The position numbers were made by a program, and so were the translations under genes. The notes below the pieces were generated by a model. That model saw only the letters and a program-made list of their open reading frames with translations, was not told where the DNA came from and did no database searches. Positions 1-50,582 of a stretch of 64,000 nt of DNA are shown here, piece by piece. The stretch's first letter is position 1, and every line of letters begins with the position of its first letter. Origin of the DNA: Dimorphilus gyrociliatus (lineage: Eukaryota; Animalia; Annelida); contig CAJFCJ010000005.1 in assembly GCA_904063045.1 (NCBI GenBank), positions 3,280,165 to 3,344,164 of the forward strand, given 5' to 3'.

Positions 1-3000
1 CTATTCCAATTCTTCAACAACTTTACTATCCGAACAACTTAAATTATGCTTTAACAGAGTGAATTATGATAGAATAACAATATTACCAAATTTCCATTCA
101 ACACCATATACATTTTATAAATTTGACGAAATCAACTTATGCATGTTTGAAACAATAGCTGAAATGACTTTAAAGTTATTACCGGAAGAAATTGATATTC
201 AAATTAAGAGTGTAGCTGAAGAGAATATAACTTTAGCCGTTATGTCTTCGTCACTTTATGGTCTTGTTTATCAACAGGATAAGTTTAAAAAATTAAATCA
301 TTGCGTTCCCAAAAAATCTTCTATATTCAACATAATTAAGGGATCAATTACAAAGCAGAAAGCGGATGTTATTGCTAATATATCTAACAAACAAAATTTG
401 ATTTCAACGCCTATTTCTAAGAAGTTAATAAAGAGGACAAAAGAATTAAAAAACCGTCTGATAAATCATCAAAATGGTTGTTATAATTTTCATAAAAAGC
501 ATGAAGTACTATTAACAAAAGGATTTGGTTTAAACTGCAAGTTTATATTCCATTCCGCTTTGAAACAGTACTCGGGTAAAGGGGATGAAAAGGTAAGATC
601 TCTACGAGAATCTTTCAATTTTGATGTAAGAAAGAAACTCTATCTATTTCCTTTTTGAACAGAATTTAATAGATCTGCTTGTTTTATGCTTTGATAAAAT
701 GAGATATAAGAATTCAAAGAGTATTTGTTTCCCGTCATTTTTCGAAGATGATTTAAACTATCCACCGGAAGTGGTTGCAAGATGTATAGAAGAAATAGGT
801 TCAAGTTATGGTAAGGAAATGGGTCTTGAAAATATAACGCTTGTAATCTCAAATATTGATATTTTTGAGGTACGTAGTTCTGAAATAAGAAACTAATTGA
901 TCATTTAATACTAACTATTAGTTATTTAATTAGAAATTTGAGGATTACTTTTACGGTAAACCTTGGAAATATGAATCTGGAAAGTTTAAACTTTATGGAA
1001 ATATACAAATTAATTTGTCTACTAAAACTCTATCAGACACAAAAGCTCAAGCTATAATATGTCCAATTGAATCCTCTCTAGCTCTGGGTGATAATCCCAT
1101 AACCAAAGATCTTGTAGAAAAATATAGTCATTTACAAGATAAAATCAATAAAATAGCCTGTAATGGTGACGTATTTTCCTATAGATTTAATGAAATGAAT
1201 AATACATTATTAATCTTTTGTAAAATTACAAATGGAGGCATAAAAAATCAAATTTTTAAAACTTTATCATATGTTGATGAATTAAATATCAGTTCAATCG
1301 CAATTCCAACAATCAAAGGTTATAATATATTTAAATACGTTTGCTGGACAAACTTTTTAACTTGATTTTTAATTTTTCTTCTCTTTTCTTTATATAGAAA
1401 ACTTTCAAATTAGTTTGTCAGAGTATGAAATATTTTTAATGATTATTGAATCGTACTTTTATGGAATAAAACCTAAAAATCTTCGAAATATTACAATATT
1501 TATGAAAGAAAATGAAAGAAACATTTATAAAGATACTCTTTTAAAAAAGTGTAGTACGTGTTATTATGTAATAATTTAATTGCTTAAATATTAATGTAGT
1601 TCTATTATAGATAATCTAAATTACGTAAATATTTCTGGTTTTAAACAATCGAATATAGTAAAAGCATTTCATGATTTTACATCTGGATTAGAATCTCTTG
1701 TTACTGCATCATCGATGAATTTACCTTACAAATACGATTCCCTTAACGTTAGTTGAATATTGAATGAATAAATTTGCATATTTAATTAATATTTTAATTT
1801 TATTTCAATTAGCCAATCATTAAATCTACTTGCGTATTTTTTCCTGACATAATAACTCAAGTTTATGGAAACGAATTATTCTTTTTTGGCTTTGAAAAGA
1901 GTGTTAAAAACTTAAAAAAGTCTCTTGACTGTATTATTAAACATCACGAACAGAAGAGAATACAAAAAGAACATAGGAATTTATTGCAAGATTGCGTAAC
2001 TATCTAACATTAATAAGTATTTATATTTCCTTAATATTTACTTTAAATGAATAGGTTCAATGGAAATATTTAAAAGATTCAATATGGATAGATTTTTCTC
2101 CGCAAGATAATATTTTAATTGAACGAAACTATTCAGAATATTTGGCGAATAATTATAATAAATGTAAATTTGGAAATGATAAATCAGAGATAAGTATCTT
2201 CTTCCAGTGTAATGAAAATCATTTATGTACAATATTTTATGGGAAAAGCGTAAATTATCCAATAAAACGTCATGATAAAGGTAAATCAATAAAAAATTAT
2301 GACGATAAATAATCATATATATTAATTTTTAGCAAGTCTTTTACCATTTACCTGGCAAAATCCTAAAAGTGAAGAATTCTCAATTTATTCAATTGATCCT
2401 TGTTCTGAAGAGTATTCTACAGTTGTCCGTTATTTAGATAAAACTGCTCAATCAAGTTATAAAAGCGTAATTAAGGTCTAATATATATATATATATATAT
2501 ATATCTGTTGTCGACGGAGCGAAGTTGATTAATAAACGCCCTCTTTCTTGTTTTATAGATAGAAAAAATTCAAAATCCTCCTCTCTATAAAAAATATCAA
2601 ACATATAAACAATCAGTAATAAAACGAATTGGTAATCCAGACTTTGATATTGAAACCTACCCCGTTTGGCACGGAACGTCAAAATCATCAATAGATGCTA
2701 TTTGTAAAGGTCATTTTGATAGAAATTTTGCTGGTAAACACGGTATATATCATAATTTTATACAAGTCTTAAAATGTAAGTGTCCTTATCTTTATCAGCT
2801 GTTCGATTTGGAATTGGTTCATATTTCGCAAAAAATGCTAGCTATCCAATAAATAATGGATACGCTTCTAGAGATGAGCAAGGTCAAAAAAGATTATTTT
2901 TATGTCGTATTATAACTGGAAAATATTGCAAAGGTTCCGACAAAATGCCCATACCGAAAGTTAAAAATAAACCTTCAGAGAATTTCGATTCAACAGTGAA

Positions 3001-3079
3001 TAACGTTGAATTTCCAACCATTTATGTTATTTTTCACGACGATGCAGCTTATCCTGAATATTTAGTAACTTTAATATAG
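1..3079 (+). CDS. PARP (mono-ART, PARP14/15-like) gene 1, 5'-partial, multi-exon: degenerate macro-like domains and C-terminal catalytic domain
   Basis: Frame is open from base 2. Macro-like segments GFGLNCKFIFH and SSIAIPTIKG. Catalytic motifs PVWHGTSKSSIDAICKGHFDRNFAGKH (about 2658-2741), GIGSYFAKNASY and PTIYVIFHDDAAYPEY up to the stop at 3079. Short GT-AG introns. Confidence 0.88.
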
Positions 3080-3308: not shown

Positions 3309-4246
3309 TTATTGAGCAGCAATCGTTAGAACATATTCTGGTAAAGCCCCAAAATCATTAAAAACAACATAAATTTCCGGATTTTCAAGATTATCAACTA
3401 CAGTCTCATATCTGCTTAATGGAAACGACATGGGATTAATTAAAGGGCTCTTCAAATGTGGTTCTCCCAAACATGAAGAACCTTGGACGATACGACACAT
3501 AATTAATTTTTTATAGTTGTTTGACCCTCGCCGAGATAAACGGTCGTTTAAGGCATAACTTACATGTCTAGCGAAATATGTTCCCATACCAAATCTGTTG
3601 CCTGAAATAGAATATTTAATTGAAAATATTTTCTATTTTCATCATAAGCATCAATAAATATAACCATTTCTCCCTTGGTAACTTCTGTTAAAATGGTCGC
3701 GACATATTTCTTCAACAGAGTTTTCATCTGTACCGTGCCAGACAGGACGAACTTCTACATTTCTGTTATTATATCTCTTTTCAATGTTCTTTTTATAAGA
3801 TTCATAAAGATCCTTTAACAAGATATTTTTTATTCTCTCAATCTGCAAAATGAATAGAATACTTAGTTCGAAACCTTTTTATTATTAAAGTGTTTACCAT
3901 AACAATTCTGTATTGGCTATTATCTCCGAGAGATCTAAAAAATAACGTTTCAACTGATTTGTATTCATCTGACCAACTGCAAACTTTGTCAAGTACTGTT
4001 TCTGCTTGAACCTCTTTTATATTGTAGAAATTTTCAGGAGTGTTTTCATTGCTCAAAGATGTAAACCAATCGCCATAATCATTCTCTGGTTGCATTATAA
4101 GCGGCTTTTCATCATTGCCATAATACATAACCTGTGAGTATAAATGAATATAGAAAATTGTATTAATTGATGTTATTATAAATATATGTTGAAATAGGAT
4201 AAAAATTATTAAAAAATACAATAACCTTTTCATATGGTTTGCGCAT
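3309..4246 (-). CDS. PARP gene 2: short, essentially catalytic-domain-only mono-ART
   Basis: Exons encode QIERIKN...PVWHGTDENSVEEICRDHFNRSYQGRNG, GTYFARHVSY and PEIYVVFNDFGALPEY. The start is either the ATG at 4246 (MRKPYEK, spliced in phase 0 to VMYYG) or the ATG at 4128. Confidence 0.85.
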
Positions 4247-4251
4247 GCGCA
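4240..4251. promoter_or_regulatory. Perfect NRF1/Ewg-type palindrome TGCGCATGCGCA between divergent PARP genes 2 and 3
   Basis: Exact 12-bp consensus in otherwise AT-rich DNA. A related TGCGCATGCGTA lies at 52194-52205 between another divergent pair. Confidence 0.6.
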
Positions 4252-4440
4252 CTTCGATCGCTATTTTTTATTTACAGAGAAGTAAATATAATAAATATAT
4301 CATTAATATTTTTCGTTATAAATTAAAAGACAAAATTTTATAATTTAAAAAAATTTTTTACAAGAATTTTGTTAAAGTTATTTTCGTACAAATTCAAAGA
4401 ATTTTCCGATGACTTGTAACTCTAAGCGAAAGTAGGAATA

Positions 4441-7400
4441 ATGTCAACGGAAATGTCCCTTGTACGTCTAAATTTAGAAGATAGTTTGGATATTAAAGAA
4501 GATAAACTCTTGTCTTTTCTGAATAATAATCTATGTAACTATGTGGATAAAATTATAGACTGTGTTGAACCATTGAGTTCAACTATTCTTTTGAAACTTG
4601 ACCGTAATTCTAGTAAGTATCATACGTAAAAATTTAGCAAATCTTTTTACTATTTGTAATTAATACATTAACTGATATTTTTAATATAAAGGCAAAAAAC
4701 TTTTATCTCTTTTTTCATTTTTTCGGTTTCGGTTTCCGTTTCGGTTTATTAGTATTATCTGCTAGCAATGTGTACCGATAAATTATACCATAAAGGTATA
4801 AAAATACAATACATACATATATGATTTTAGATTTAGAGAAACTATTACGACCAAACGAACATATTTTATTGAAAACACCTGATGAAAGAACAATTAAAGT
4901 ATTAGATGCTTCCCTTCTAAAACCAGGTTCGAATTGGGAAAGACACTTTGATCCCCAAATGAAGGAGGCTGGTAAAAAACGTTCATTTATTATATATTTA
5001 ATTGTTTCTTATCATTAGACAATCATATTGTAGATATCAAAACTACTGACATGAAGATACAAGATAATGTAAATAAACGCAGTGATTCAAACTACGATTC
5101 ATCAATGGGAGAAAATATAAATGGTATTGTTCTAATAACAACCTTAAATATTGCGATCTATTATTATAAAACATAATTTTCAGAGAAAGCTATTCATATT
5201 GAAATTAAACCTAAAAAGGATGAGAAACTTGATCTTAATCTTGTTTCTTCGTATGTCAAGTCAAGATTTACTTTTGAAGGGGAATATAACATAAAAACAG
5301 TTGAAGATTCGATTATATTACTTTGTGATTCGCTGAAAGGTATTTAAACTTGTTCTATAAAATTACTCGTCTTTAAAAGTAAATTAATAACGTTATAGAT
5401 TCCAAAACTATACTTAAAAACTGTACCAAAGATACGGTTATTTATGGAACAGATGTTATAGTTGTTGAAACAGACAACACCTTCGTATATGTAGAATGGG
5501 AGTCTGAGGAAAATATTACCGATTTAGAAATAATTTTGATATTTGGAGTACCAAAAGACATAGAAAAAGGAAGTAAGAACTTCGGTATTAAAGAGATCTA
5601 CTTTTTGAATGAAAAGCAAGCTGTAATAGAATTTGAAAAAGCTAAATGTATTTAATTAAATATTCGATAAATTCAAAGATTACTAATACTTATCTGTATT
5701 CCTATAAAGTTGCTAAAAACTGCATAGGAAAAGGAGATATTGAATCAGATGGTACCAAATTTAAAGTATTCACACCTGGTCGGATAAATCTAATAAAAGA
5801 TTGCCTTGCAAGAACAATACAAGTTATAGATTTATCAGATGAAATGTCAAAGCGCATCAAAAGCATTCTAAAGTTATGCTGTTCCGAAATCGTTGCTGAG
5901 GAGTGTCTTTACAATATTGAAGGACAAGAATGCTACGTTATTCTGAGTGATGAAAAAGGTAAACTTATCTCATTTTTAATAAAAACGTTCTAGTTCAGAC
6001 AACTTTCTAGATGCTTCATTGGTTTTGGAAAATTATCCAAAGGGAAAAGAATTCACTTTTCAAAAACTAAATTTGGAAGCTTATTTAAAATACTTGCTTA
6101 AGACGAGCCAGACAAACATTCTATCTAAAGATGATTCTATTAAAAATAATAACAGTTCAAATGAGACAAATGCCTTAACAAGCAATGGCAATAATACTCA
6201 GCAAAATAAGGACACTGATAAGGATAAATGTTTTGAAGATGGAAATAGTTCCGATGATAATTGTGAGAGTAGGGATGATAGCAATGATAAGAATAGTTAT
6301 TCTGATTGTTACGAAAATACTCACTCTGAAAACAGTGACACTAATAATAGTGATTTTGAACAAGAAATAGTATTAGATCATTGTAAAGATACAAAAAGTT
6401 TGTTCTCGATATTCAATTTATTTTAACCTTAATAACTTACTTTTTCATTGAAGATACAGTAACATTAATTGCTTTTCTTCAAAACGATCAAGTACTTGAA
6501 GAAAAGAATTATAGAGAAATATTTACAAACCCTGACAAGTCTGGTGGGAGTGAACCTTTGGATATAATCGTCAAAAATTCATACGCAACTTTAACATACA
6601 AGTCATTAGAAAGTAAAAAATACTGTTTCAGTATAAAAAAAACATATTAATAATTTTCAATAACAGCTTCAATGAAAGTCCTTAAACAATGTTTTGAAGG
6701 CATCTTTTACAACAATAATCGGATATTTGTTACTGAAGAAGATAATCGTTTCATATGCATCAAGTGTATATCGGATAAAAAAGTATCAGATCTCGATTTT
6801 CAATTATGCTCTTCAATTCCTAGGAATGAGGCAGGTGAAAATTATGGTGTTGCAAACAAATATCTTCTAAATAAAGATTCTCGTTTAATCGAATATGAAA
6901 AATCAGAATGTAAGTATCAAAATAGATAAAATAACACAAGTATTATATCTATTTCCTATTCGATACAGATGCTAAACAATTTATTAAAAATGGATATTTG
7001 GAAAAGAAAGATATAGTGTTTAAAGTATACACACCAGGATTTATTAATTTATCTCATGCTTTTCTAAATCGTACACTTCAATTACAAGATTTAACTGAAG
7101 ATGACGCAAGTTTTGATAAAATTGATGGTATTTTGAAGATTAATAATAATGAAATAAGATTGATAGATTTTTTATATTATCCAAAAATTAAACTTGGATT
7201 TCTAACTTTTGAGAATCCTGAACGTAAGTGATATTGTGATACATATATAACAAAGTTTTATAGCAAAGTTTAGTTTCTTTCTAATTTTAGATGTTAAATA
7301 CTTGCTAAAGGTTAAAAGTATAACTTTTTCCCATGTAACTTATAACTTTCAAGAGCTGGACTTTAAGACATATCTACGTTGTAAATTTGACCAAGATAAA

Positions 7401-10400
7401 CAAGAGTTAGACACTCTCAGGAAAATGAATAAGATTTTATCACATGGAAGCATTTCGTTGCCACCCGACTTTAAAATGAAATCTGTTTTTATTTATTTTC
7501 TTAAGCAGTCAAAAAAATGGATGAACGAATTATCTAATTATATGATAGAGAAGAGTGCAAAAGTTTCGGTGGAAGAAGATGCTAAAGAACTAACTGTTTG
7601 TTTTCACAGCAATAATGACACAAATGTAGAGCTACGCAATTGGAATTTCAGATCTAAAAAGAGTATAGATTCATTTTTGAATAAGAATTTAGAATTTCAA
7701 GAAGTCTCCATAGGGAAGAAGTCTAATATAAAATTCAACGAATTCAAGGATACTGACGATATTATTTATAAATGGAAACCATCATGTGTTACTATAGTAG
7801 GAACAAAAGCTTCCGTAAAGAGAGCCGTTGACCTTATTCGCATCAGAGCAATGGATACAATAACTATAGACTTGCAAACTGAGTTATTTAAAGAATATTT
7901 AGAAAATGCGAAGACTATATCAAAATTAAAAGAGAAGCATGAAAGAGTTACTTTTAATATGGCAAAAGAGTTAAAAATAATTGTTAAAGGCCCTGAAAAC
8001 ATTCTTAAAAATGTAAAAATGGAAATACTTCAAGATATTGTCAACACAAGTGAAGAAACTGTGAAATTTTCTCCGAAGATAATAAAAATATGGAAGAACG
8101 AAATTAAGTTTAAAGAAGATGTTAAAAGCCTTATTAAATCAAGGTCAAATATTGTAGTTGTTTTCGAATGGATTGATTTGAATACGATCAAATTTATTTC
8201 TAATTCTGAAGCAGATTTACTACTAATTGCTAAAGAGTTAAAAACTAGTCTTCAAACAAGTTCAATTGATATTGACAATCATAGAAGTCAATTATTAAAG
8301 AGCAATGAGTGGAAAACTTTTTATGAAAACTTGAAAAAGGAATGTAGACAAACTTTCTATATAAGAACTGAGAATAACAAAATCAACATAGGGGCTGTCA
8401 AATGTATCGATTTCGTAAGCAGAAGGATGAACACATTTTTTCAAGTCAATGAAAAGGCAAAAATAAAGATACAAATAACTGACAGCGATATGTTTCATCT
8501 TAAGAATGGTCTAAAGCCAAAATTACTGGAATGTATAAAAGTAGGATGTTTTTTTGAGGATTCTTCTATCATTGCAAACTGTAGGAAATCTGAAGAGAAT
8601 GCACTTGAAACGAAGATAAAAGCCTTTCTAAAAGATAATATTTTCTCCGAGATCATCGAGTTTACCAGAAAGAATGATATCTTTGTATTGAAATTTGATA
8701 ATATAAAATCTAAAATTATCAGGATGATTGGTCAATCTGAAAAAGTCTTTTTCAAAACCATTTCAGTTCCATCCAACGTTAAGACAAATATATCAATATT
8801 ACACATAGTCGAAGGAAAACTATCTGATCAAAATACTGATGTTTTTTTAAATACTATTTCCGAAAAGTTTGACCTTAGAATTGGAGTAGTCTCAAGATCT
8901 CTTCTTGAAACTGCGGGCTCTAGTTTACAAGAGGAATGCCAAAGTAAATATCCAAACGGAGTTGCAGCAGGCGAAGTTGCAGTAACTGGTGGACATGATC
9001 TTAAATGTAAATATATTCTGCACCGAACTCTTGCTAAGAATCCACCTAACAATAATGATCAGGTTAGCATATATTTAAATTTAATAATCTTAAATTCTAC
9101 TGTAAAAGTAAAAACAATCTTTTATTGAAATAGCCAATCATTGAATATCTAAAAGATTGCCTAAACAAAGTATCATCACTTAGTAATGTCAAATCTGTAT
9201 CAATGCCGGCTATTGGAACAGGAAAATTAGGCTATAGTCCTGAGTTAGTTGCGAGAAGCATTCAAACGATAGCCAATACAACAGGTGTTAAAATTGGATT
9301 ACAGAGAATAAATGTTGTCATTTACCCAGGCGAAAGCAACATATTATCAGTAAGAAACTTAAATAATATGTAACTTACACTGCAGTACCTTTTGTGTTGA
9401 ATTTTCTGTAGTCTTTCCAAAAAGTATTCAAGTCTGCACCAAACAATACAGGAAATCGTAAGTTTACCTTTTAGTTTAATAATCGTAAATAACACAGATG
9501 AAAATAAACAGCAAATAGTATAAATATCCAATGTAGCAGTCTCAGTTTATCCAATGTAAAAAAAGGAGTTACTGAGTTTAGGAGCAAAGTTTCGGAATTT
9601 TATGAAACCTCTACTATAAAAAGTTCTTTTAAATTGAATTCATCCGAGGTAGGTATACGCTGAACATATATATATATATTCCTAACTTCAATATACATAA
9701 GTTAAAATATTAAATAGGGAAAAGAACTGGAAAAATTAACCGAATTTGGAGCACACATTGAAATTTCTGATTCCAAAGAAATTATAGTTTCTGGTTTAAA
9801 GTCAGGCGTTTCCTCGTTAAAATACAAAATTAAAAGTAAACTAGAAAATTTTGAAGAAAGGAGGAAAACTCAGCAACTTCGAAAAATCGTTCAAGTAAAT
9901 AAGATTAATAAAACTAAAAATTTCAATGTTTAAATGTTTAATTATTAATTTTTTTTTGCTAGTTTCAATGGCAGTTTGATATAAATGGAAAATATAAAGA
10001 TTTTGCAGATGATAGAAATATTGAAGTTGAAACACATTATCAAAGATTTTTACAGCAGCCTAGTGAAGATACAATGACTATTCGGTCAAGGAAAACAAAA
10101 ATGAAATATACTATACACTTCCAGCAAAACGAATCGCACTATCAACTTGACGAATCAAATAATAAAATTAAACTAAAAAGAATTGACAAAAGTAAGTGAG
10201 ATTTAATTTTTATCTCTTTATATTTATGTCGTCAAATAGAATCGAGAAATGAATATCCAAAAACTTGGAGTGAATCTGAAAAAGAAATGGAACGAATGGT
10301 TGAAGTTGATCAAAACACAACCGAATACGCGACAGTCGTCAACCATCTAAGCTCGGGAAGGTCAAATTACACAAGAATTTTAAAGGTTCAGGCTTTTCTG

Positions 10401-10950
10401 TTTTTATTTAGATTGTTATATAAATGTAGAAGTTTTGATTTTAATTAGATTGAAAGAGTGCAAAATCCTACTTTATATAAACAATATCAACTGTACAAGA
10501 ACAAGCTTTCTAAAGATATTAATAGAGATGCAGAATTTTATCCTGCTTGGCATGGTACAGATTCTGCAACAGTTAAAAGTATCGTGAAAGGAAATTTTGA
10601 TAGAAGTTTCGCTGGGAGACATGGTTCGTTTCTTGAATAATATATAATGTCTAAATTGTGATATTAATCTCTTTTGTCCAATACATTTAGCTGTGGCTTA
10701 TGGTCAAGGAGTTTATTTCGCTCGGAATGCGAGCTATTCTTTACAAGGCTTTTCAAAGCCGGATCAGTCGGGTATAAGGAAATTAATTCTTTGTAGAATA
10801 GTTGTTGGAAATTATTGCCCAGGCAATTCTAGTATGAAAACTCCGGGACCAAATTACAATTCAACAGTTGATAACGTCAACAATCCTTCAATGTTCGTCG
10901 TTTATAATGATAGTGCAGCATACCCAGAATATGTTATATCTTTACAATAA
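4441..10950 (+). CDS. PARP14-like protein (gene 3): repeated RRM-like N-terminus, KH-like region, macro domain, WWE, PARP catalytic domain
   Basis: ATG at 4441. Long exon 7302-9061 leads into a macro domain (DVFLNT...SRSLLETAGSSLQEEC...GEVAVTGGHDLKCKYILH, then MPAIGTGKLGY). WWE (FQWQFDINGKYKDF) near 9960-10190. Catalytic AWHGT...NFDRSFAGRHG, GQGVYFARNASY and PSMFVVYNDSAAYPEY; stop at 10950. Confidence 0.9.
4721..4747 (-). promoter_or_regulatory. Tandem ISRE/IRF-type array (GAAANN repeats) in intron 1 of the PARP14-like gene
   Basis: The minus strand reads AAACCGAAACGGAAACCGAAACCGAAA, i.e. four GAAA cores at 6-bp spacing. Confidence 0.6.
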
Positions 10951-11567: not shown

Positions 11568-14500
11568 ATGGGTAAATTTGAAGACGTAAAGTGTAAATAT
11601 TAATTTTTGTTATATTATTCTAACAAATTTGATGTTAAACTATAAGCGATTCGATAGAAATTTCGATAAAAATGACTAAACCTCGTGTTGCAGCTGTGTA
11701 TGCAACCTTATAATTTAAATTTTCCCCCAAATCTGTAGACTTTACTGGACGGCAGATATCAGAGGATTTAGAAAAGCCTGTCTGTATAAATCTTAATGCT
11801 GAAAAGCATGAAAAATTGGTAAATAATATTTACAATTTTTCTTATCTATTAAAAAAGACATTATAAATAATCTAAACTGTGTTTTTCCAGTCCTTTACCG
11901 GGTATGCTCCTGTAAAATGGCGTATAATCTGTTTGTGGATACTTACAGTATTGACTGTTGGTTTAATAAGATTGGTTTTCTATTGGAAACCGGATTGGTC
12001 TTTGAAATTTACTCATTCCATTGTCGCACTATCTGATGCTAAGAACATGCTTATCAAGGTAATATTTGAAATTCCTTTCTCCGCTTTTTTGTTTAAATTT
12101 ATCTTCATAAAAGGGATATTTAATTTTATTATACTTACCAATGCAGTCTTAGAGTTAAAAATGCTATTGAATGAATGACCTATTCGAATGAGTATTCATA
12201 ATTTTTGTCAGTGTATATTGACAGAATACTTTAAAGAGAGAGATTAGAACAATGTTCTAGGTACAACTTATATATAATATATAAACTTTGATCCGTTCAA
12301 GTTCATTAGGATATCATGAACTTAGTACATAATTCTTTTCACTATTACAAATCTTTGTTTGTTTAACTAAGAGTAAAATTTCGTTTGTTTGAAACAAAAG
12401 GATCGTTATCGACGGAATTACGTAGCAAGGATAAAGGAAGAGTATATCTTCGAAAGGTTGTTTAATGCTTATATTTTTTTTATTATCTAAAACAGTTTAT
12501 TTTTATTTTTTATTTACTTTTTTTTTCCATTTTCTAGTTCCGACGAGAAAACAAATACTAAAGACAAAGTAAATATCTCTTTACTCTATCAATCTTTAGA
12601 TTATTTGTTTTTTGTTTCAAGGTTATCAGAAGATTTTTTAAACACGAAAAAGTTAAATTTATCTGGGATACAGAGTCCTTAAAATTCTCCAAAGTCAAGT
12701 ACGAATTTTTTTTGATAATATACTAATATACTGTATATATTATAATTATTTACATCTATCTATCTGTATAAATTTATATAGATGGCTTAAAAAGGATGTT
12801 AAATGTTCAGAATTTTATGATCTAAAACCTATAAAACCTATTGAAACTATTGAACGGCAGAAGTTATTTGGCATAAATGCCATTGATGTTCACGTGACAC
12901 CTATTTTTAAACTCTTTTATACTCAGGTTACTTTAATTAGCAATTTAAAATTAATTTAAAATAATATTATTCATTCCTTTAGATATTTAATCCGTTCTAC
13001 GTTTTTCAAATATTCAGTGTTATATTATGGTATAATGATGAATATTATTATTATGCAACATGTATTATTCTTATATCGGCCATATCCATAATTGCTTTTA
13101 TAAGGCAGACTAGACAGGTAACTCATTTATTGTGCAATATAGATTAAAATTTCATATTAATATTGCTACTTCCTAATTGAATGGTCTCTACAGCAAAAAA
13201 ATTACGTTGAGATAATCACATTTAAAATATTCCTTTCAGATTGAACGACGTCTAAAAAATATGATCTCTCCCATGAGCGTAGTAACTGTCTGTCGAGGTG
13301 ATGATATACAATTTCAAGAAGTCATGTCCGACGATCTAGTTCCAGGGGATATAATTGAAATACCTAAAGGTGGATTCATTGTGCCATGTGATGCAGTATT
13401 ATTAAACGGAAACTGTATAGTTAATGAAAGTATGTTAACTGGTGAAAGTGTTCCTGTAATGAAGACACCGTTACCTAATTTGAATTCTCAAAGTTTCAAC
13501 ATGAAAGATCATTCTAAACATGCACTTTTTAGCGGCACAAAAGTTGTACAAGCTAGATATTTCTGTGAGGGTAAAGTTAGAGCTGTTGTCCTAAAAACAG
13601 GTTAGAGCAATAAGTCTAATTTAAATATAATAAATTTTTACATCTTCCTTAATTTATTCGTAATCAGGGTTTTCAACTATGAAAGGAAAACTAATTCGCT
13701 CTATAATGTTTCCAAAACCAATTAATTTCAAATTTACCCAAGATTCTTTTAAGTTTGTTGGATTTTTAGCTATTCTAGCTGCTTGTGGCATGATATTCAC
13801 ATTAGTCATAATGGTATGTTATTAAATACATGTGCTATCCAGATAGACCTATAATTAATTGATATATGAAATTATCGGTGCTTAATTCTTATTATTAATA
13901 GATTCGGAGAGGAGAAACCGTTAAAAGAACTATACTACGGACATTGGATTTGATAACTATTGTTATTCCACCAGCATTGCCTGCCGCTTTGACAATTGGA
14001 ATTAGTTTTGCCCAAAGTAGATTGAAAAAGTTTAATATATTTTGTATATCTCCAACGAACATTAACATGTCTGGATCAGTAGATTGTTGTTGTTTCGATA
14101 AGGTATATAGAAATTGATAAAATGTATATAAAATTATTTTAGAGATGAACTCAATTTCTGAGTGTTATTACTGATAAAATTTTTTTTCTCGAAATAGACG
14201 GGAACACTTACCGAAGACGGTATGGATTTAAAAGGTGTACTACCCTGTAAAAACTCCAAGTTTGTTATCAATTTTCCCAATTAATTCTTTAACTATTGTT
14301 ATATTTTTCTATTAACTGTCCAGATTTAGCCCTACTCTACATCATACTCCATCTTCGTTAGAAAGATCCCCTCTATTAAGTGCCTTAGCTACGTGCCACT
14401 CTTTAACTATTATAAATAAAGAGCTATGTGGAGATCCAATGGATCTCAAAATGTTCGAATCAATTAAATGGGATTTAGAGGAAGTCGGAGAAGACAATGA

Positions 14501-16945
14501 GAAATACGACATGTTAGTTCCAACTATTGTCAAACCAAGAGCAACTGATAAAGAAGCAAAAGATGAATATAACGATACTCCATATGAAATAGGTATTGTA
14601 AGACAAATGGTCTTTTCTTCTCGTTTACAAAGAATGAGCGTGGTAACTAGAACATTAGGTGAGATTTATTAATTATTTACACTAATAGTTAAGTTTATGG
14701 GCAATATATCTTTTAACAGGCGAAAATCATTTTAACTTATTCACTAAAGGATCACCAGAAATGCTTTATAGTTTATGCAATGTAAAATCCCTACCACAGG
14801 ATTTTTACGATATACTCTACTTTTACACTAAAAGAGGATATCGTGTCCTTGCTCTCGGATACAAGGATCTTGGTAGAATGAGTTATGTCAAAGTACAAAA
14901 ATGTGCTAGGGAGGATATGGAAAAAGATCTACACTTTCTTGGCTTTCTTATTATGGAAAATCGATTAAAAATTGAAACGGAAGAAGTTATCAGGGAACTT
15001 CAATTTGCAAACTTTAAGACACTTATGATTACTGGTGATAATATGCTAACGGCTCTGAGCGTTGCTAGAGATTGCTCCATGATATCAGATTTAGATGAAG
15101 TGTATATGGTTCACGTAACCGATTTTAATGGAGATGTTAAAGTTGAACTTGCTCCTATCGATGAAAATAAAGAAGAAAATAAAGATGTATGAATTATTTT
15201 TAATTAATTTTCATAACAACATAAATATTATATAATCAAAAATTTATTACACAGCAAATCATATCAAATCTACGCAAAAATGTACGGTTAGCAATAACAG
15301 GAAAATCATGGAATTTGGCACGTATCTATTGCCCAGAATTGTTAGATTCTGTGTGCGTGAGAGGTGTCGTCTTTGCAAGAATGCTACCAGAGCAAAAAGT
15401 AGAGGTTATAGAAACTTTACAAAAGCTAGATTATTACGTATCAATGTGTGGTGATGGTGCAAACGATTCATCCGCTTTAAAAATGGCTCATGCGGGAATA
15501 TCTTTGTCAGAAGGAGCAGAAGCGTCTGTAGCAGCTCCGTTTACTTCTAGAGAGATGAATATAAAATGTGTACCAAACGTAATAAAGTAAGAAACATCTC
15601 ACTCTTTTAGTTAAAAGACTTTAATAAATTTGATATTATTGCAGACAAGGACGAGCAGCTCTGGTAACTTCTTTTGGCATATTCAAATTTATGGCTTGTT
15701 ATAGTTTAACTCAGTTTACATCAGTAACAATTTTATATTGGGTAAATTTAGACTTGCCACATTTCTTTGACATCATTTAAAGTAACCGTTTATTCTTAAT
15801 ATAACCCTGACAGATTGGAGCGAACTTTTCTGACTTTCAATTTTTATACATTGATCTTGGATTGTTGACAACACTCAGTATTACATGTAAATTCAAACAT
15901 TTCTCCTTTAGTCCATTTAATTAATAACCTTTCTCTATTTATTTGTTGTTTCTTTTTAGATGGTTATACGAAAGCGTATACAGCACTTGTTCGCGAAAAA
16001 CCCGATATTTCATTATTTGCACTCACACCCATATTATCAATTGTTGTTCAAATTATAGTTATAATTAGTACTCAAATATTAGTTTGGTTCTATATAAAAG
16101 GCCAACCATGGTAAGTTTGAAATTATATTTGATTTATGATTACTTGAATTTATTAATAATAAATTTCCGTATTCTTTCAAATGAAGGTTTACTGCATATA
16201 AATTTCAAGATGAGGCTGATTATGTTTGTGATGAAAATACAGCAGTTTTCCTCATTTCAAGCTTCCAGTATGTTTCAAGCGCAATTGTATTTTCAAAGAG
16301 CCGACCTTTCCGACAACCCATTTATACGAATTATATATTTGTAACGAATATTTTGCTGGTATTAGCCTTAAATGCATTTTTTACTCTCTTCCCTCCTAAA
16401 TCTGTTCAAGAATTTATGGGAGTAAGTATATTTTTTAAATAATCCATACCTTTTTCATGAATAATATATTAATATATTCATTTTAAAACGAATTCTTTCA
16501 GCTCCAAATTCCTCCTACACTCTCATTTAGATTTTTATACGTTGGAATTGCTTTGGCGTCATTTTTACTGTGTTATCTGCTTGAGGTAAGTATTTTTTTT
16601 TTAATATCCGTTCAATTTGAACTGGTAATTGAACTATTTCCTGATTTATAGGCTTTTGTGGTGAATTCTGAATTATTATGCAAAAGAATCGAGAAGAAAG
16701 TTGAGGAAAAGTTGAGTAAACCAACTGAATATACAATCGTTGAAAATAAATTTGACAAAGAGTTAAAAAAGCTACCTCTTTCTACTGATACGTTAGTAAA
16801 TGTATTGAACAGCGAATTATCTACAAGACAAAGGCATGCTTCCAATTTCTCTAGCGAAAGATCCGAGAGTTACCGTTATGCAGTTGAAAGAGAAAAATTT
16901 ACTGTTGATGTTATTGACTCTCGAATTGATAGCACATTGTTATAA
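11568..16945 (+). CDS. ATP13A3: P5B-type ATPase (polyamine transporter), ATP13A3-like
   Basis: Spliced exons give [10 protein letters not shown] (A-domain), VIPPALP (TM4, P5B signature), DK|TGTLTEDG (phosphorylation site split by intron 14102-14197), MITGDN and MCGDGAND. Exons 1 and 2 join in frame. Paralog assignment is by overall similarity. Confidence 0.92.
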
Positions 16946-17263
16946 ATGAACAAAGAACGTTTGAACATACTGAAGAAACATCTCCGTAGTTTAAGGTGCA
17001 TCTTTTACTTTTCTTAAAAACTAAAGAAAGTTTTCATACTGTTATACAGTAAATCAGATGCATTTCTAAAGTAGTTTATTAATGAAATCTCTAAAATTGT
17101 TGATAAAGATAATTTATTAAAATAAACATATCAAAAAGTTCAAACTGATAACTCTATTAATTAACGAATTGTTAGTTAATTGGGGTTTACAGATGTTATG
17201 TTATATTCTATTTATTTTGTTTTAGTGATTATTGTTTAGATCATGTTTAGTGTTTAGTGATTA

Positions 17264-19516
17264 TTATTTAAACTGGCTTTTGTCAACAGAATATGGTACC
17301 GTTATCTTAAATTTGCTGTTTTCTTTTACAAGTCTTCTTATTGTATCAACAGCGTTTTCATTTCCGCACCAACTCCTTCGAGCAACACCGTTTGCTACAT
17401 CCCAGCCAATAGCATTTCTTACTTTCTCTGCAGCATCGTTTGAGCCATCTAGAATCAATCCAAATCCACCATTTATTACTTCTCCCCATCCAACACCACC
17501 GCCGTTATGCAAAGCTACCCAGGTAGCACCTCTGAATCCAAGACCAATAGCATTTTGAACGGCCATATCAGCACATAAAGCTGAACCATCGTAAATGTTT
17601 GATGTTTCCCTAAATGGACTATCTGTACCAGAAACATCATGATGATCTCTAGATAGAATTACAGGCGCCTTTAATCTACCATTGGCAACAGCTTCATTAA
17701 AAGCCAAGGCAATTCCAATTCTTCCCTGTTGATCGGAATATAAAATTCTTGCCTGGGATCCAACAACCATTTTATGTTTTTGAGCTTCTTGAATCCATTT
17801 AATATTGTCCTTGTATTGTTGTTCAGCCCTGGTACCAGTATTCTTTTCCATCAGTTTATGTAAAACATCTTCAGCTATCTTATCTGTTATTTCTAAGTCT
17901 TGAGGATCAGCTGAAGAACAAACCCAACGGAAAGGACCAAATCCCAATGAGAAAATATCTCCCATAATGTGTTGAACGTATGATGGATATCTAAACACGT
18001 GAATTTTTTCTCCTGGAAGTCGAACTTCAGCTCCAGCTCGAGAAGCTTCCAACAAAAAGGCATTTCCATAATCCCAAAACTTTAATCCTTGTTCATTTAA
18101 GAAATTAATGGCATCAATCTGACGAACAAGAGATTGTTCAACTAGTTTTCTAAATTTGATAGGATCAGAACTTAAAAGTTCTCGTGAGTCATTAAAAGAT
18201 AACTGTTGAAAAAAATTCTCTCTTAAAATTGTCCCACATACCACATTTCAAACTTTTGTATTTTGTTACTTACACCTGCCGGGTAATAACCGCCTGAAAA
18301 AGGATTGTGACAGGAAGTTTGATCCGATCCGAGATCGCAGAGTAGTTCTCCTGTAGATCTATACTCTTCAACCAATCTTTCCCATAAGTCGACAATATTC
18401 CCAAGATAAGCTATGCTAGTTGCTTTTTTCTCTTTTCTATATTGTCTGATTTTAGCAATAACTACGTCTAAGTCGTCAGTCTTTTCAAGAACCCATCCCT
18501 GATTCTTTCTTTTGTCAACAGCCTCTGCGCTAACCTCAGCAACCACACCAATACAACCGGAAATAACGGCGGCTTTGGCCTGAGCGCCACTCATACCTCC
18601 CAAGCCGGAAGTAATAAAAACTTTGCCGCGTAGATCCTTTTCAAATACGAGTAGAGGGTTTACAAACAATCATCGTATATCAATAAAATGAAATTGGAAC
18701 TTACCTCTAGACCTAGATATTTCCTTCCAGCGTTTAAAATGGTTAACGTTGTTCCATGAACAATACCTTGTGGTCCAATGTAGCAATAAGACCCAGCCGT
18801 CATTTGTCCATACATGGTTACCCCAAGAGCGAATAATTTCTCGTAATCTTCTCGATTAGAATAATTGGGCACCATCATCCCATTAGTAATAACTAAGCGA
18901 GGAGCAGAGGAAGATGATGGAAAAACTCCCAAAGGATGTCCCGAATAGAGGACCAGAGTTTCATCGTCCTCTAATTCGGATAAATATTTCAAAACAAGCC
19001 AAAATTGTGCCCAATTGGAGAGTACTTGACCATTTCCTTTATTTAAGAAATGCTTTTATAAGATATGGTACAGACTTTAAATAAAAAGAGATAATTATTG
19101 ATAAGAAAAAAACAAATACCTCCGTAGGTTACTAATTCTTCCGGAAATTGAGCGACTCTTGGGTCTAAATTGTTCATTAGCATATGCATTATAGCCGCAG
19201 CTTTTTGAGTTTTAACAGGATAAAGGTTGATAGGGTAAGCCTTTATTGAGAATTGTGGCTTCAATCTATACATGTAAATATGTCCATACTCATTTAATTC
19301 TTGGAGGAACTCTTTCCCTAGTTCAAGATGAGTCTCCGGTGGAAAATATCTTAAAGCGTTTGAAATAGCTTGAACGGTATCATCCTCATTCAAATTAGGA
19401 CTGAGCTTTGGTGCATGAGCAATAAGCGGATCTCTTTCGTATTTCGGAGGTAGAGGATCCACAGGTAGACCAGAGCAGATTATTTTCAAAAAGTTTTTAA
19501 TATCAGATTCTTCCAT
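17264..19516 (-). CDS. UROC1: Urocanate hydratase (eukaryotic type), 4 exons
   Basis: YGHIYMYR, QFPEELVTYG, GQMTAGSYCYIGPQGIVHGT, GLGGMSGAQAKA, DLGSDQTSCHN, ILSRDHHDVSG, LHNGGGVGWG. The three introns are GT-AG and restore the frame. Start ATG at 19516 is inferred. Confidence 0.96.
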
Positions 19517-20276
19517 CTCCGATGTTGGTTTAAAAATGAAAGGATACGGCGAAAAACAGTGCAATTTTATACTTCATTGTAATCCTCCCAACACAATCGA
19601 GGACTTGGATTGCACATTATCGTCTTTATTGTATTTTTTTTCACTAACCCTTTTGATTTATTATCAACTAAAATGTTTCTAAGTTTACACAATCAAACAA
19701 TAGGATAGTTAGTGAGTATTTTAACAGTTTACTCTGCAAAAACAATGGTTGTCTAAAAGAATAAATTCACGTCTTATTTATGTATATCATTAAAAAACTG
19801 TCTACTTTAAGAGAAAAAACAAAAGAGAACACATATAGGACTAAATCTTTTTCTGCCAGATGACAATAGAGACATATGTATGTTCTTTTAAAAGAATGTT
19901 CGCTTCTATTGATAATGAGAAGTAATCTTTTTATATTTACATATGCTATTCGGAAATTGAAGTAAATTTCAGATAAGTTATCAATGGAATTAATAGAAAT
20001 AGAAGGTTTCTTTTATCGATATTGGATAATTTTAGGTGAAATATGACCTGATTAGAGAAAGAGACAGACAGCGAGGACTGATGACGTGTAAAGAATCATA
20101 GGTTCTAAAATATCGTGCATTAATTCTTTTATCTTTGTATAAAGATGTCAAATTATAAAACAATAAATTAACATTATTGTCTATTGACAATTTGGGCCTA
20201 TTTTATTCAGTTTTTGAACAATTCAAATCCCTATATCTATTATGAAACGACACTAGTAATATGTTTTTATTGTATT

Positions 20277-27956: not shown

Positions 27957-28736
27957 ATGAGTAGTGTTATGGAAAAGGATGGATTTACACTTGTAAAGAA
28001 AGGCCGAAAGCATAAAAGAAAATATAAGCCAATCCCAGCAGATATTTCAGCTCAAGAACTAGACGAATTGGAAATAAAGAAATTTCTCGAAAATTTTACT
28101 CATTGTCTTATTGAAATGGAACAAAGCGAATTATTACACTTTATCAAATCGAAATACGAGAAAAATGACGTTGAAATGATAGAAAAAATAGAATGTTTAG
28201 GATTAGGATCAATAACAAATAATAAACAAGCTAGATCTCAACTGGCTCTACTCGTTCAATTAAAGTTATTTTTTAACTGTCCAGTTCTAGCCTATGATCC
28301 CATTTTTACCGAAGCTGATAAGATAGTGTTATCAGAGTTTAATATTCTTGTTGACGAAGAAAATACAGAAGGTATGAAGGAGACGACTGGAAAAACACTC
28401 TTCTTCATGCCCCATTGCTCGAAACCTCTCGTAAACAACATACTTTACTCGAATTGGTCGAGAAAACTACTTGGGAATGTGCAAATATTCGGGAATTCAT
28501 TCGAAAATATGATTGTTCGACACACGTTTCAAGATATGGAAAAATATGCTGGATACGTACTATTGTCACAGAAATTTGTTAAAGAAATTTCGATTCCTAA
28601 CAATATAATCATCGATAACGTTTTCAACGATACATCATTACACTACTTCGATAATATTGATAAATTAAATGTATCATTTTCCAAAGCTATCCAACCTATA
28701 TATGATAATGATGAATTAGACTTTATAAAGAAGTGA
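27957..28736 (+). CDS. SRRD: SRR1-like protein, intronless CDS
   Basis: CLGLGS...ARSQLALL, YDPIFTEAD, TLFFMPHC..L.NNILYSNW, GNSF: the SRR1 domain pattern. Confidence 0.88.
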   Translation: MSSVMEKDGFTLVKKGRKHKRKYKPIPADISAQELDELEIKKFLENFTHCLIEMEQSELLHFIKSKYEKNDVEMIEKIECLGLGSITNNKQARSQLALLVQLKLFFNCPVLAYDPIFTEADKIVLSEFNILVDEENTEGMKETTGKTLFFMPHCSKPLVNNILYSNWSRKLLGNVQIFGNSFENMIVRHTFQDMEKYAGYVLLSQKFVKEISIPNNIIIDNVFNDTSLHYFDNIDKLNVSFSKAIQPIYDNDELDFIKK

Positions 28737-30408: not shown

Positions 30409-30478
<70 letters not shown>

Positions 30479-39164: not shown

Positions 39165-41719
39165 ATGGGAAATAAATCAAGTAAGACAAAGAAGAACAGA
39201 GATCAAGAAGAACCAGTTAAAAAGAGAGATAAAAAAGGGATTAAGAAAGAACGACCTTTAAGCGAATCTGCAGTATCAGAAGTTGTATTCCGCAGGCCTG
39301 ATTCTTCCTTAACAGGAAGGCGATCACACTACGAGGATGTTATCTCTGAAATGGTGTTGTACCGTATTTTCTTTTCAATATTATTTAGTGCTAAGAATTA
39401 TTAAATTATTAACAAATGTCGTAAATATAAATCTATACAAGTGTATATACATGTAAATAGAGTAATCCTTCAAGAAGAAACCCTATCGTAAAGGAAGAAC
39501 CAGCGCCTGATTATAATGGAATGAATAGAAAAGATATAGAAGATTTATATGAACAAAGTATAAAAAAAGTAAGAATTTTCATCGATTGTTTATTTGTTTC
39601 TTTCTTTCTTGTCCTCCCTCCCTCCTTTCCTTTTTCTTTCTCGAATAATAATTGTTGTCATTATCACATTTACTATCAAAACGATTAGTCAGTTTTGTTT
39701 TGTATTATGCAAGTAACAAGAACAAAATATGAAAGAAAAAGAAAGAAAGAAATAACGATCCTATCCAATTTGTTTGAACAAATATAATATATAAATCATT
39801 TTATTCTCTGCTATCAAAAGGTGTTAGCCATATGGCCCGAGTACGATTGCCTTATGGATATCAATACGTCGGCTTTAGATTTGAGTTTAGTGAAAACTAT
39901 GCAACAAATATTTAATCGGTTAGTATATTAGACATAATATATGTACAGAATATATATATATATATAGTATATATAAGCAAATAACAAAGAGTTCTTTTTT
40001 TTTTAACAAGTGTCCTGTATCTAATTTCTAAAAATAAGTATTTTTCTCAATTAGTCAGACCTGGTGATAATAAATAATTGTCAGTTGTATTCTCCTCTAT
40101 TTTCTACTCTTCTTATCGCGCTCCTTTTTTCTAATAATATAACTTTTTCTCTTTTTTTTTGAAGTCTCTTCCAACAACATCATTCTTTTGAAAAGTTATC
40201 GAGGGATAAACATTCTTTGGAACAAAAGATAGAAGATCTCGATAGAATAGCTGAAAAACGTCGAAGATATATTCAATACTATAAAGAAGACATTGCCTTA
40301 TTACAGGATGATATCGTTAAACATGGTTATAGTCTGCCCAAAAACTTTGAACCTATTCAAGAAGATGATCTACTACACAATGACGATTCTGAAGAGGATA
40401 TTCAAAAGGAGGAAGTTCTTCGTAGATTAAGAGATAAAAAAATTTTTAAACCGACCTTTTCTCCAATTGAATCGGATGTAAGAGATGTAAAGAGGACACC
40501 GAGTCTTAAAGTTTCGATGGCAGCCCAGGCAGCTGCTGTAGCCAGACATTCTACATCCGGTAAAATTGAAATGAACTTACACGAAAAGATTAAAAGATTG
40601 CAAATGGAATTAGATAGGGAAAAGGATGAAAATAAAATATTAAACGAAAAGTAAGCATAATTTATTTTTACAAAACTCTTTTCCTATTCTTCCATCTTGT
40701 TTTATATATTAATTAAATCGTTTTTAATAATCTATTGATTTATCTAAAACATAAAAACAATCTCTTAATTTTTTCGTTAACAGATTAGAAACTATGAGGA
40801 GTTATCATTCTCCGAAAAAGAATATAGATAATAATAATTTAACGAAATTGAAAGCGAAATATGATCAACTACAAGAGTTTTCCAATAAGGTTTTTTCCCT
40901 TTTACGGCGGGAGGCTCACAATCTGGATTACGACCTCAAATGCCAATTTATATGCTCGGTTATAGAGGTTATTTAGATTTTTTCTATTAATGTTACTATC
41001 TAATTTGATATGAAGAAGTGTAAATATCTTTTTGTTTAGGAATCTTATTTTACGTCGGAAAAAGCCTTCAACAAGTTTAACACGAACTTGAAGTACCTTC
41101 TACACAATCCAACTGCTATCTTAAACTCTAGGGTGGGGATATTTTAGATTTAAAACATTATATATTCAAAATTAATAGAAATTTTTCTCCCAATTTCTCC
41201 CTGTCCCCCTTCCCTTCCCTCACTACTACAGTTTAATGACTCAAAGGCTTCCCAAATGAAACAGTATCCACCTGTCGAAGTTTTAGAGGAAGCAGCCCGT
41301 TTTCTCAAGGAAACAGCTCACAATATTCAAATTTCTACTCTAGCCGAGGATACCATAGATATACTTCTCAAAAGTCATCCAGAATGCATGATATCACCAA
41401 TAATGAACCATTCATCGTTTACCGATTTGTTACACAACTCTGTTCGCCTAACATGGCAGATGGTTACATCCGATCCACCATTGTAAAATTAACTTATAAA
41501 TAATTGATCTATTCATTCGACAATAACGCCTAGTATTTCTTACATAATAGATATATTGATGCCTCTAAGAGACGCTACGACCCTGAAGGACACATATCTA
41601 TCAATGATCTCGACAATCCGGATAGAGAATACTACGTCGATTTTTACCAATGGCCTATTCTACTTAGTCATAAGTATGGACGAGTTCTGAGTAAAGGTCG
41701 AGTTGTTCTAAGCGATTAA
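39165..41719 (+). CDS. Coiled-coil protein with a C-terminal Mieap/SPATA18-like domain
   Basis: MGNKSSK start; coiled-coil exons; C-terminal SVRLTWQMVTSDPPL...QWPILL....GRVLSKGRVV resembles the Mieap C-terminal domain. Orthology to SPATA18 is not established. Confidence 0.65.
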
Positions 41720-49627: not shown

Positions 49628-49688
49628 CGGAAAACTTTGAACTGCACGGATTTTGCAGCTCTATCCACCTTGTTTATTATATTTTCGA

Positions 49689-50285
49689 ATGATGGCTGTT
49701 CCCGTCTTCTTTTGCCTCATATTCCTCCTCTTGCCGTTCGTAGTGCGATCTGGAACACCTATTCTCCCTCTACCTGACCTTCTCCAACCGAAAAGGCTGG
49801 ACAAATATCCGTCACCTACCGATTCCGATTTGCATATTCCTTCTCTTCGAAAGAAGTTGGGTGAATACTACGAGCCAGCACTTATGTCGATACAACCCAA
49901 GTTTTCTGTTAGGTGGAAGAAAAGTATGATAGTAGCTCATAGAATCGGAAGTAGATTACGGAGAGCCGTACTGAACATACGAGGTCTAAACGGAAAGAAG
50001 AAACGGAAATTGTTGAAAAGTCTGGCAAGGATTACTCGTTGCCAGTTATACGAACGATGGGAAGATTTGGGCGAACGCTACTGGCCAAGGTGGGTTAAAC
50101 AGACAACTTGCGAACGTACAAGGAAAAAGTCATGTTCTATTCCAACTGGAATGTATTGTACTGACGGAAAGACGGTTTCGTACAAATTATTGTATTGGTA
50201 TTGCGAAACCACAAAAGTTTGCAATTGGGTGAAAATTATTTGGCCCGTTACTACAAAGTGCACATGCGCTTGCTCGAATTATTAG
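49689..50285 (+). CDS. NOG: Noggin (secreted BMP antagonist), intronless
   Basis: Signal peptide MMAVPVFFCLIFLLLPF; LPLPDL...DL..LRKKLGEYYEP; cystine knot CQLYERWEDLGERYWPRWVK..C...SCSIPTGMYC...WYC...C.W...PVTTKCTCAC. Confidence 0.92.
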   Translation: MMAVPVFFCLIFLLLPFVVRSGTPILPLPDLLQPKRLDKYPSPTDSDLHIPSLRKKLGEYYEPALMSIQPKFSVRWKKSMIVAHRIGSRLRRAVLNIRGLNGKKKRKLLKSLARITRCQLYERWEDLGERYWPRWVKQTTCERTRKKSCSIPTGMYCTDGKTVSYKLLYWYCETTKVCNWVKIIWPVTTKCTCACSNY

Positions 50286-50547
50286 ACTACAAAGAAGAAA
50301 AAAAATAAATGAATAGCACGAATTTCAATGTCGTTTTCTGTCAATCGCTTGAAAACTGTACAATATGTATATACCTATTAAAGTACATATATTATTATTG
50401 TCTATGTATACCTTTCTTTACTGTGTTTATATAGATATATACAGTATATATAGATATGTAAATATATATATATATTTTTAAAAACGCATATATTTATGCA
50501 AATAATAAGATATATATATTATATATTTATATATTTACAAAAATACA

Positions 50548-50582
<35 letters not shown>

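Follow-up and report, generated by a model that had tools for sequence, protein, structure and literature searches.

Gene content of the locus

The stretch of DNA analysed in this study (64 kb, hereafter the window) comes from the miniature annelid Dimorphilus gyrociliatus (PMC10212961) and belongs to contig CAJFCJ010000005.1 of assembly GCA_904063045.1, on which the record position equals 3280164 plus the window position. The intronless SRR1 open reading frame of the window (27957–28733) had a single exact match in the public collection, on this contig. It opens inside a tandem pair of macro-PARP genes (genes 1 and 3), with a small PARP-only gene (gene 2) between them. Upstream of the annotated start of gene 3 lies an array of GAAACC/GAAACG hexamers, at 4721–4747 on the minus strand (CAJFCJ010000005.1:3284885-3284911), which is the element considered here; all the evidence on it from D. 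gyrociliatus derives from a single assembly.

Gene 1 is a tandem macro-PARP paralogue of 1548 aa on the plus strand, represented by its 3′ part (1–3079), its 5′ end lying 2.7 kb before the window start. Gene 2, at 3309–4128 on the minus strand, encodes a protein of 233 aa with the PARP catalytic domain only; 593 bp separate its ATG from the array, and it is divergent to gene 3, as the original prediction had stated. Gene 3 (DgyrCDS3860, CAD5114820.1) extends over 4821–10950 on the plus strand in 18 coding exons, separated by 17 annotated introns of about 51–71 nt, and encodes a macro-PARP (PARP14/15/9-like) of 1698 aa.

The domains PF01661 (Macro) and PF00644 (PARP) were both detected on the exons of gene 3 and on its annotated product, as in a macro-PARP, and the nearest named relatives of the protein were mollusc PARP14/15/9-like proteins. 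RRM and KH domains of the PARP14 type gave no Pfam hit in residues 1–650 of gene 3 or in any N-terminal exon (E ≤ 1); a PARP14-like protein of Mytilus has RRM_PARP14 and KH_PARP14. The earlier description of gene 3 as PARP14-like is thus appropriate with respect to its Macro and PARP domains and its mollusc relatives, but not to the PARP14-type RRM/KH region, and macro-PARP is the safer name. The 608-aa exon of gene 3 gave no match in its length band when used in a word search; an exhaustive search recovered, besides the gene 3 protein, many macro-domain matches and one full-length relative (P0002, 31% identity). Further macro-PARP paralogues of D. gyrociliatus were not found among ten candidates picked by amino-acid composition out of 150 representatives, all of them molluscan or unnamed. 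Gene-family expansions are few in D. gyrociliatus and consist of immune genes duplicated locally (PMC7854359), a pattern with which this PARP cluster is consistent.

Two shorter isoforms of gene 3, DgyrCDS3861 and DgyrCDS3862, end before the PARP catalytic exons. The former appears to run into the intron after 10385 (region 10386–10445) and the latter stops earlier; they would be macro-only products or annotation artefacts.

Sequence characteristics of the array

The plus strand at 4721–4747 reads TTTCGGTTTCGGTTTCCGTTTCGGTTT, i.e., (TTTCGG)4.5, and the minus strand AAACCGAAACGGAAACCGAAACCGAAA, with four GAAA cores at a period of 6 bp and 2-bp spacers formed by C and G. The same structure was reported by Tandem Repeats Finder (unit TTTCGG, period 6, 4.5 copies, 90% matches, score 47), and the predicted four-core GAAANN array is therefore confirmed. 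It contains three overlapping matches (minus strand, 4721–4742) to GAAANNGAAA, the canonical dimer site of the interferon regulatory factors (IRFs), in which GAAA is the half-site (PMC6954429). The array has, in consequence, the at least two GAAA half-sites with a 2- or 3-bp spacer that define a dimer site in an interferon-stimulated response element (ISRE) or IRF element (IRF-E), and it is equally a microsatellite in the usual sense of head-to-tail units of 1–6 bp. The unit carries C/G spacers and contributes four CpGs within a stretch of 24% GC, and the variant repeat unit yields one CGGAAAC (GGAA/GGAAA core) and one AACGG.

The window holds five occurrences of the three-core pattern GAAANNGAAANNGAAA, where dinucleotide shuffles predict 0.10, and 23 of the two-core pattern, where they predict 8.8; such shuffles do not model replication slippage, so this excess overstates the significance. 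The consensus of the IRF-E is G(A)AAA(G/C)(T/C)GAAA(G/C)(T/C), and the sole match in the window to the pattern GAAA[GC][TC]GAAA[GC][TC] is GAAACCGAAACC at 4725–4736, inside the array. The extended ISGF3-type consensus (A/G)NGAAANNGAAACT has no match in the window. The candidate intron and the promoter proved not to be copies of a repeat dispersed within the window.

The statement that no comparable array exists elsewhere in the window proved incorrect, as two more multi-core arrays are present, one with four cores at 52546–52567 (GAAAGGGAAAGGGAAAGAGAAA) and one with three cores at 40844–40859. Both appear to be coding sequence (an Arg/Glu-rich and an Asn/Lys-rich run, respectively), as judged from in-frame reading and not from an annotated gene model; if so, the array at 4721–4747 is the sole non-coding array of this type in the 64 kb.

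Position of the array with respect to gene 3

The three public isoforms (DgyrCDS3860–3862) all start with MILDLEKLL at ATG 4821, so that the public annotation places the array 74–100 bp upstream of the start codon and not in an intron. An unannotated candidate first coding exon of gene 3, an open reading frame of 57 codons with a GTAAGT donor, is found on the plus strand at 4441–4612, followed by a candidate first intron of 218 nt (4613–4830, plus strand, GT...AG, phase 1) which contains the array; in the public annotation this second interval comprises the sequence upstream of ATG 4821 and the first 10 nt of the coding sequence. The candidate exon joins the annotated first exon in frame through a TTTTAG acceptor. 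Its codon-usage score is 0.145 in frame, vs −0.65 and −0.99 out of frame, and the confirmed exons score 0.15–0.16; its GC content is 0.297, vs 0.21–0.24 in the flanks. ATG 4441 has an A at −3, and ATG 4821 stands just 10 nt before the candidate acceptor. Nothing in Pfam matched 4441–4612, and it showed no homology to the exons of the related species described below. Homology of this exon or of exon 2 to the N-terminal exons of that species or to gene 1 was also sought by BLASTP, tblastn and Pfam, with nothing recovered.

These sequence features tip the balance somewhat towards the upstream exon being real, in which case models DgyrCDS3860–3862 would be 5′-truncated. The original placement of the array in a first intron accordingly agrees with a plausible exon and splice model, but is contradicted by the public annotation. 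The candidate intron, unannotated as it is, would be unusually long, at about 3.5 times the length usual in gene 3 instead of the four times first estimated; the median intron of the genome is 66 bp (PMC7854359). Open chromatin in D. gyrociliatus is located mostly in promoters and (first) introns, and the introns with peaks in the assay for transposase-accessible chromatin (ATAC) are unusually long (PMC7854359). Under either gene model the array occupies a location proper to an ISRE/IRF-E, that is, promoter, 5′ region or first intron.

The intergenic region between genes 2 and 3 also has a perfect NRF1-type palindrome, TGCGCATGCGCA, at 4240–4251, about 115 bp from the ATG of gene 2. GCGCANGCGC occurs once only in the window, at these positions, and is absent from the locus of the related species.

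Syntenic locus in a related species

P0002 is encoded in Logan assemblies of runs SRR23372229 and SRR23372216 (loci L002, L003 and L005). Their source is a relative distinct from D. gyrociliatus, since the exact SRR1 protein was found only in the NCBI assembly. The two assemblies are identical over 7.3 kb and thus carry no information at the population level, and the same sequence is also present in runs SRR23372232, SRR23372215 and SRR31984834. A search for more relatives with the last exon of gene 1 gave this relative alone, on short contigs, together with one entry without DNA.

The locus of the relative (L005 1–20468, SRR23372229 contig 18593), with 26% GC, comprises in this order an extra macro-PARP gene, gene 1, gene 2 on the opposite strand and gene 3. 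Identity to D. gyrociliatus is 73% in the last (catalytic) exon of gene 1 but only 31% in the large exon of gene 3, which indicates that the non-catalytic part evolves fast. The region between genes 2 and 3 of the relative, of 1659 bp, gave no alignment to its counterpart in the window.

Two clusters of three GAAA cores each were found in that region: GAAACTGAAACTTGAAA on the plus strand (L002 7698–7714) and GAAAGCAGAAACCGAAAC on the minus strand (L002 8122–8139), the latter 190 bp before the first ATG of gene 3. Their cores are spaced at 2 and 3 bp, and both clusters are non-microsatellite and of the GAAAC[CT]GAAAC type. The second shares with the array, on the same strand, the 11-mer GTTTCGGTTTC, which is the rarest k-mer common to both regions. 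In shuffles of the 1659 bp, 0.003 matches to the stringent pattern were expected, at least one match occurred in 0.3% and two in none of 2000, and an 11-mer was shared with the array by chance in 0.14% (p = 0.0014). The stringent pattern was confined to the regions between genes 2 and 3 in a comparison that covered 69 kb of D. gyrociliatus and 25.5 kb from the relative; nearly all the intergenic DNA on the contig of the latter flanks PARP genes. The relaxed three-core pattern has one further cluster upstream of gene 1 of the relative (L005 9214), and CAGAAACTGAAACT, also in the relative, fits the extended ISGF3-type consensus but for its first base.

The two-species comparison is a fair independent test, as the array had been specified before the locus of the relative was examined. 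The syntenic clusters favour a selective retention of the motif, and the constraint would act on the motif itself, since it alone survives in flanks that are otherwise unalignable. In both species the sites are nearer to gene 3 (74–630 bp) than to gene 2 (0.6–1.45 kb).

A single IRF-type half-site, AAGCGAAAGT, is present on the plus strand at 4424–4433, 8 nt before ATG 4441, and a resembling AAGCGAAAAA about 95 bp upstream of the ATG in the relative. The IRF-E-like element that had been proposed just before the ATG therefore exists, but it is one half-site only and AANNGAAA is found 229 times in the window, so that it carries no weight by itself. A 14-mer, ATTTTCGTACAAAT, lies at 4380–4393, 48–61 bp before ATG 4441, and has an inverted copy in the relative (L002 7609–7622), 76 bp upstream of the plus-strand cluster; its chance expectation, roughly estimated at ~0.09, is marginal.

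Possible function of the array

On these data the array may be an IRF-type (ISRE/IRF-E) cis-regulatory response element for gene 3, and possibly for gene 2, a reading that we put forward tentatively, at close to an even chance. According to it, gene 3 would be induced when one or two dimers of an IRF-family factor, activated by nucleic-acid or pathogen sensing, bind to the tandem half-sites, and the divergent PARP-only gene 2 would perhaps be co-induced. The number of half-sites was probably set by replication slippage of the GAAACC unit. IRF dimers tolerate spacers of 2 and 3 bp, and the PRDIII-I element of interferon-β is a run of half-sites occupied by two dimers (PMC5861432); the four tandem half-sites of the array, and the three of the relative at 2- and 3-bp spacing, fit this dimer architecture. 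Invertebrates are without interferon, and the element would thus act by direct IRF binding and not as an ISGF3 target.

The IRF family is of ancient origin in animals and occurs in Lophotrochozoa, with an expansion in molluscs and a loss in insects and nematodes (PMC3308963, PMC6723221). IRF and STAT motifs mark the genes induced by poly(I:C) in Nematostella, and orthologues of PARP12, PARP14, DTX3L and IRF1 belong to immune co-expression modules in Aplysia. In vertebrates, PARP9, PARP12 and PARP14 are interferon-stimulated genes. The presence of IRFs in annelid genomes was reportedly described by Nehyba et al. in 2009.

Several results weigh against an IRF-type element. In D. gyrociliatus, the 1 kb that precedes the annotated start of gene 1 is devoid of GAAANNGAAA, and no ISRE cluster was detected near the coding start of the PARP14-like loci of Mytilus (L006) and Saccostrea (L007), whose transcription starts are unknown. 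IRFs are not mentioned for D. gyrociliatus in its genome paper or supplements (PMC7854359), and the accessible literature yielded nothing specific on IRFs in annelids or Dimorphilus. The sample for conservation is one relative, and the motif precedes the first candidate exon in one of the two species and follows it in the other; the conservation is for this reason at the level of the motif and not of the position. To these must be added the near-perfect microsatellite nature of the array, in a window where GAAA is in phase in five of the roughly 13 arrays of period 6 (TTTCGG, TTTTTC twice, GAAAGG and AAAAAG).

Conservation, which had been proposed as a check for orthologous introns, was recovered for the orthologous gene at motif level in one relative, but neither in position nor at the two mollusc loci, and these data do not establish an IRF-PARP module as deeply conserved. 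The idea that IRF control of PARP14-like genes may predate interferon keeps the IRF-type sites and the syntenic clusters on its side, but not the mollusc loci or gene 1. The broader view of an IRF-to-macro-PARP antiviral regulon in annelids, older than interferon, with a slippage-tuned enhancer maintained by motif turnover and not by positional conservation between dinophilid species, is doubtful, though conceivable.

The in-phase GAAA of other period-6 arrays and the lack of a comparable site at the paralogous gene 1 would also be expected if the array were a neutral hexanucleotide microsatellite, produced by replication slippage, whose likeness to an ISRE came from the common GAAA/TTTC units of a genome with 28% GC. 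The array is, moreover, one entry in the 121 rows of short tandem repeats that Tandem Repeats Finder listed for the window. A neutral origin does not account for the two three-core GAAAC[CT]GAAAC clusters of the relative, which are not repeats and which occur at the syntenic region and nowhere else in ~92 kb, nor is the CpG-bearing, C/G-spaced unit like the other hexamers of the window, which are A/T- or purine-only, so that we regard this explanation as rather unlikely.

A real cis-element could be read by a factor other than an IRF (NFAT/Rel-, ETS- or Myb-like, or unknown), perhaps for constitutive or developmental expression, as motif-level conservation shows constraint and not the identity of the binder. 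The CGGAAAC and AACGG created by the variant unit would suit such factors, and the promoter also has the NRF1-like palindrome, which is typical of housekeeping promoters. The ETS, NFAT and Myb cores, however, occur once only, in that variant unit, and are missing from the sites of the relative, and the feature common to both species is tandem GAAA at 2–3 bp spacing, the signature of IRFs. Gamma-activated site (GAS), NF-kB and ETS motifs were at background rates, and neither an NF-kB site, a conserved GAS nor a flanking ATF/Jun site was found beside the array. A non-IRF reader is on this basis improbable, more so than the neutral repeat.

An RNA-level element, in which, if transcription began upstream, a U-rich UUUCGG repeat in the 5′ untranslated region or in a retained intron could affect translation or splicing, is very improbable: the public models start at 4821 without an upstream intron, so that the array could be transcribed, and the candidate intron would be overlong for a genome with splicing tuned to short introns, but the two clusters of the relative are on opposite strands, as fits a DNA element, and the array has no Rfam match and no repeat of its sequence elsewhere in the window.

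Other features of the window

A GAAAGG/GAGA purine repeat at 52520–52610 reads in frame as an Arg/Glu/Asp-rich run (RERERE...RDRDRHRDR) and is located about 1.3 kb upstream of an open reading frame with a protein kinase domain (53908–54453); it illustrates that GAAANN arrays can arise in coding low-complexity regions. TA/AT tracts are present at 50428–50582 (~78 imperfect copies), just downstream of the Noggin open reading frame (49653–50285), and at 30412–30474 (31 perfect copies). The neighbouring genes (11879–19564, 27957–28736, 49653–50285 and 62178–63251) include those for a P5-type ATPase, urocanase, SRR1, Noggin and an MT-A70-family methyltransferase. A relaxed three-core match at 49993 lies inside the Noggin open reading frame, and the remaining named neighbours are free of GAAANN arrays and serve as informal negative controls. 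Rfam families and tRNAs were not found in the window.

Significance and comparison with known systems

IRF-driven antiviral gene sets that precede interferon have previously been proposed in oysters, Aplysia and Nematostella, and the concept is not new. To our knowledge, the antiviral transcriptional wiring of annelids is essentially undescribed. If functional, the array would be a concrete annelid cis-element that ties a macro-PARP effector to a factor of the IRF type, and would extend to this phylum the pre-interferon gene sets of molluscs and cnidarians; it would also be a regulatory element built from a microsatellite, with a number of half-sites possibly set by slippage. If it is no more than a microsatellite, its only lesson is one of caution with motif matches where genomes are rich in AT. 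For D. gyrociliatus, whose genome is very compact (73.8 Mb), ATAC-seq and cap analysis of gene expression (CAGE-seq) data have been published (PMC7854359).

The array resembles the vertebrate ISRE/IRF-E in its core, its 2-bp spacing and its C/G-pyrimidine spacers, and in having three overlapping dimer sites near the 5′ end of a gene. It differs in having no extended ISGF3-type match, and in an invertebrate, without interferon or ISGF3, only direct IRF binding could apply. With PRDIII-I of interferon-β it shares the tandem half-sites, and the mixed spacers of the relative are those of PRDIII (2 bp) and PRDI (3 bp) (PMC5861432); in contrast, the array of D. gyrociliatus is a perfect-period microsatellite and not a composite enhancer, and is not flanked by NF-kB or ATF/Jun sites.

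The array has the arrangement of the synthetic (GAAANN)4 tetrahexamers, virus- and IRF-responsive elements reportedly studied in the Weissmann and Taniguchi laboratories around 1987–1991, which also had four tandem GAAANN hexamers but were artificial constructs used in mammalian cells; the GAAACC unit may or may not behave in the same way. The human PARP9-DTX3L pair has a bidirectional promoter responsive to interferon-gamma, with IRF/STAT-type sites. As there, the region considered here lies between divergent genes of the macro-PARP system, but the partner gene is PARP-only and the sites are much nearer to gene 3.

The interferon-less IRF gene sets of oyster, Aplysia and Nematostella offer a similar lophotrochozoan or cnidarian setting, with IRFs and co-regulated genes like interferon-stimulated genes, including orthologues of PARP12, PARP14 and DTX3L, although none of them concerns annelids or gene 3. 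Finally, the array is like an ordinary hexanucleotide microsatellite in its period of 6, its 4.5 copies and its one variant unit, and unlike it in having a CpG unit in very AT-rich DNA and a non-repeat form of the motif at the syntenic site of another species.

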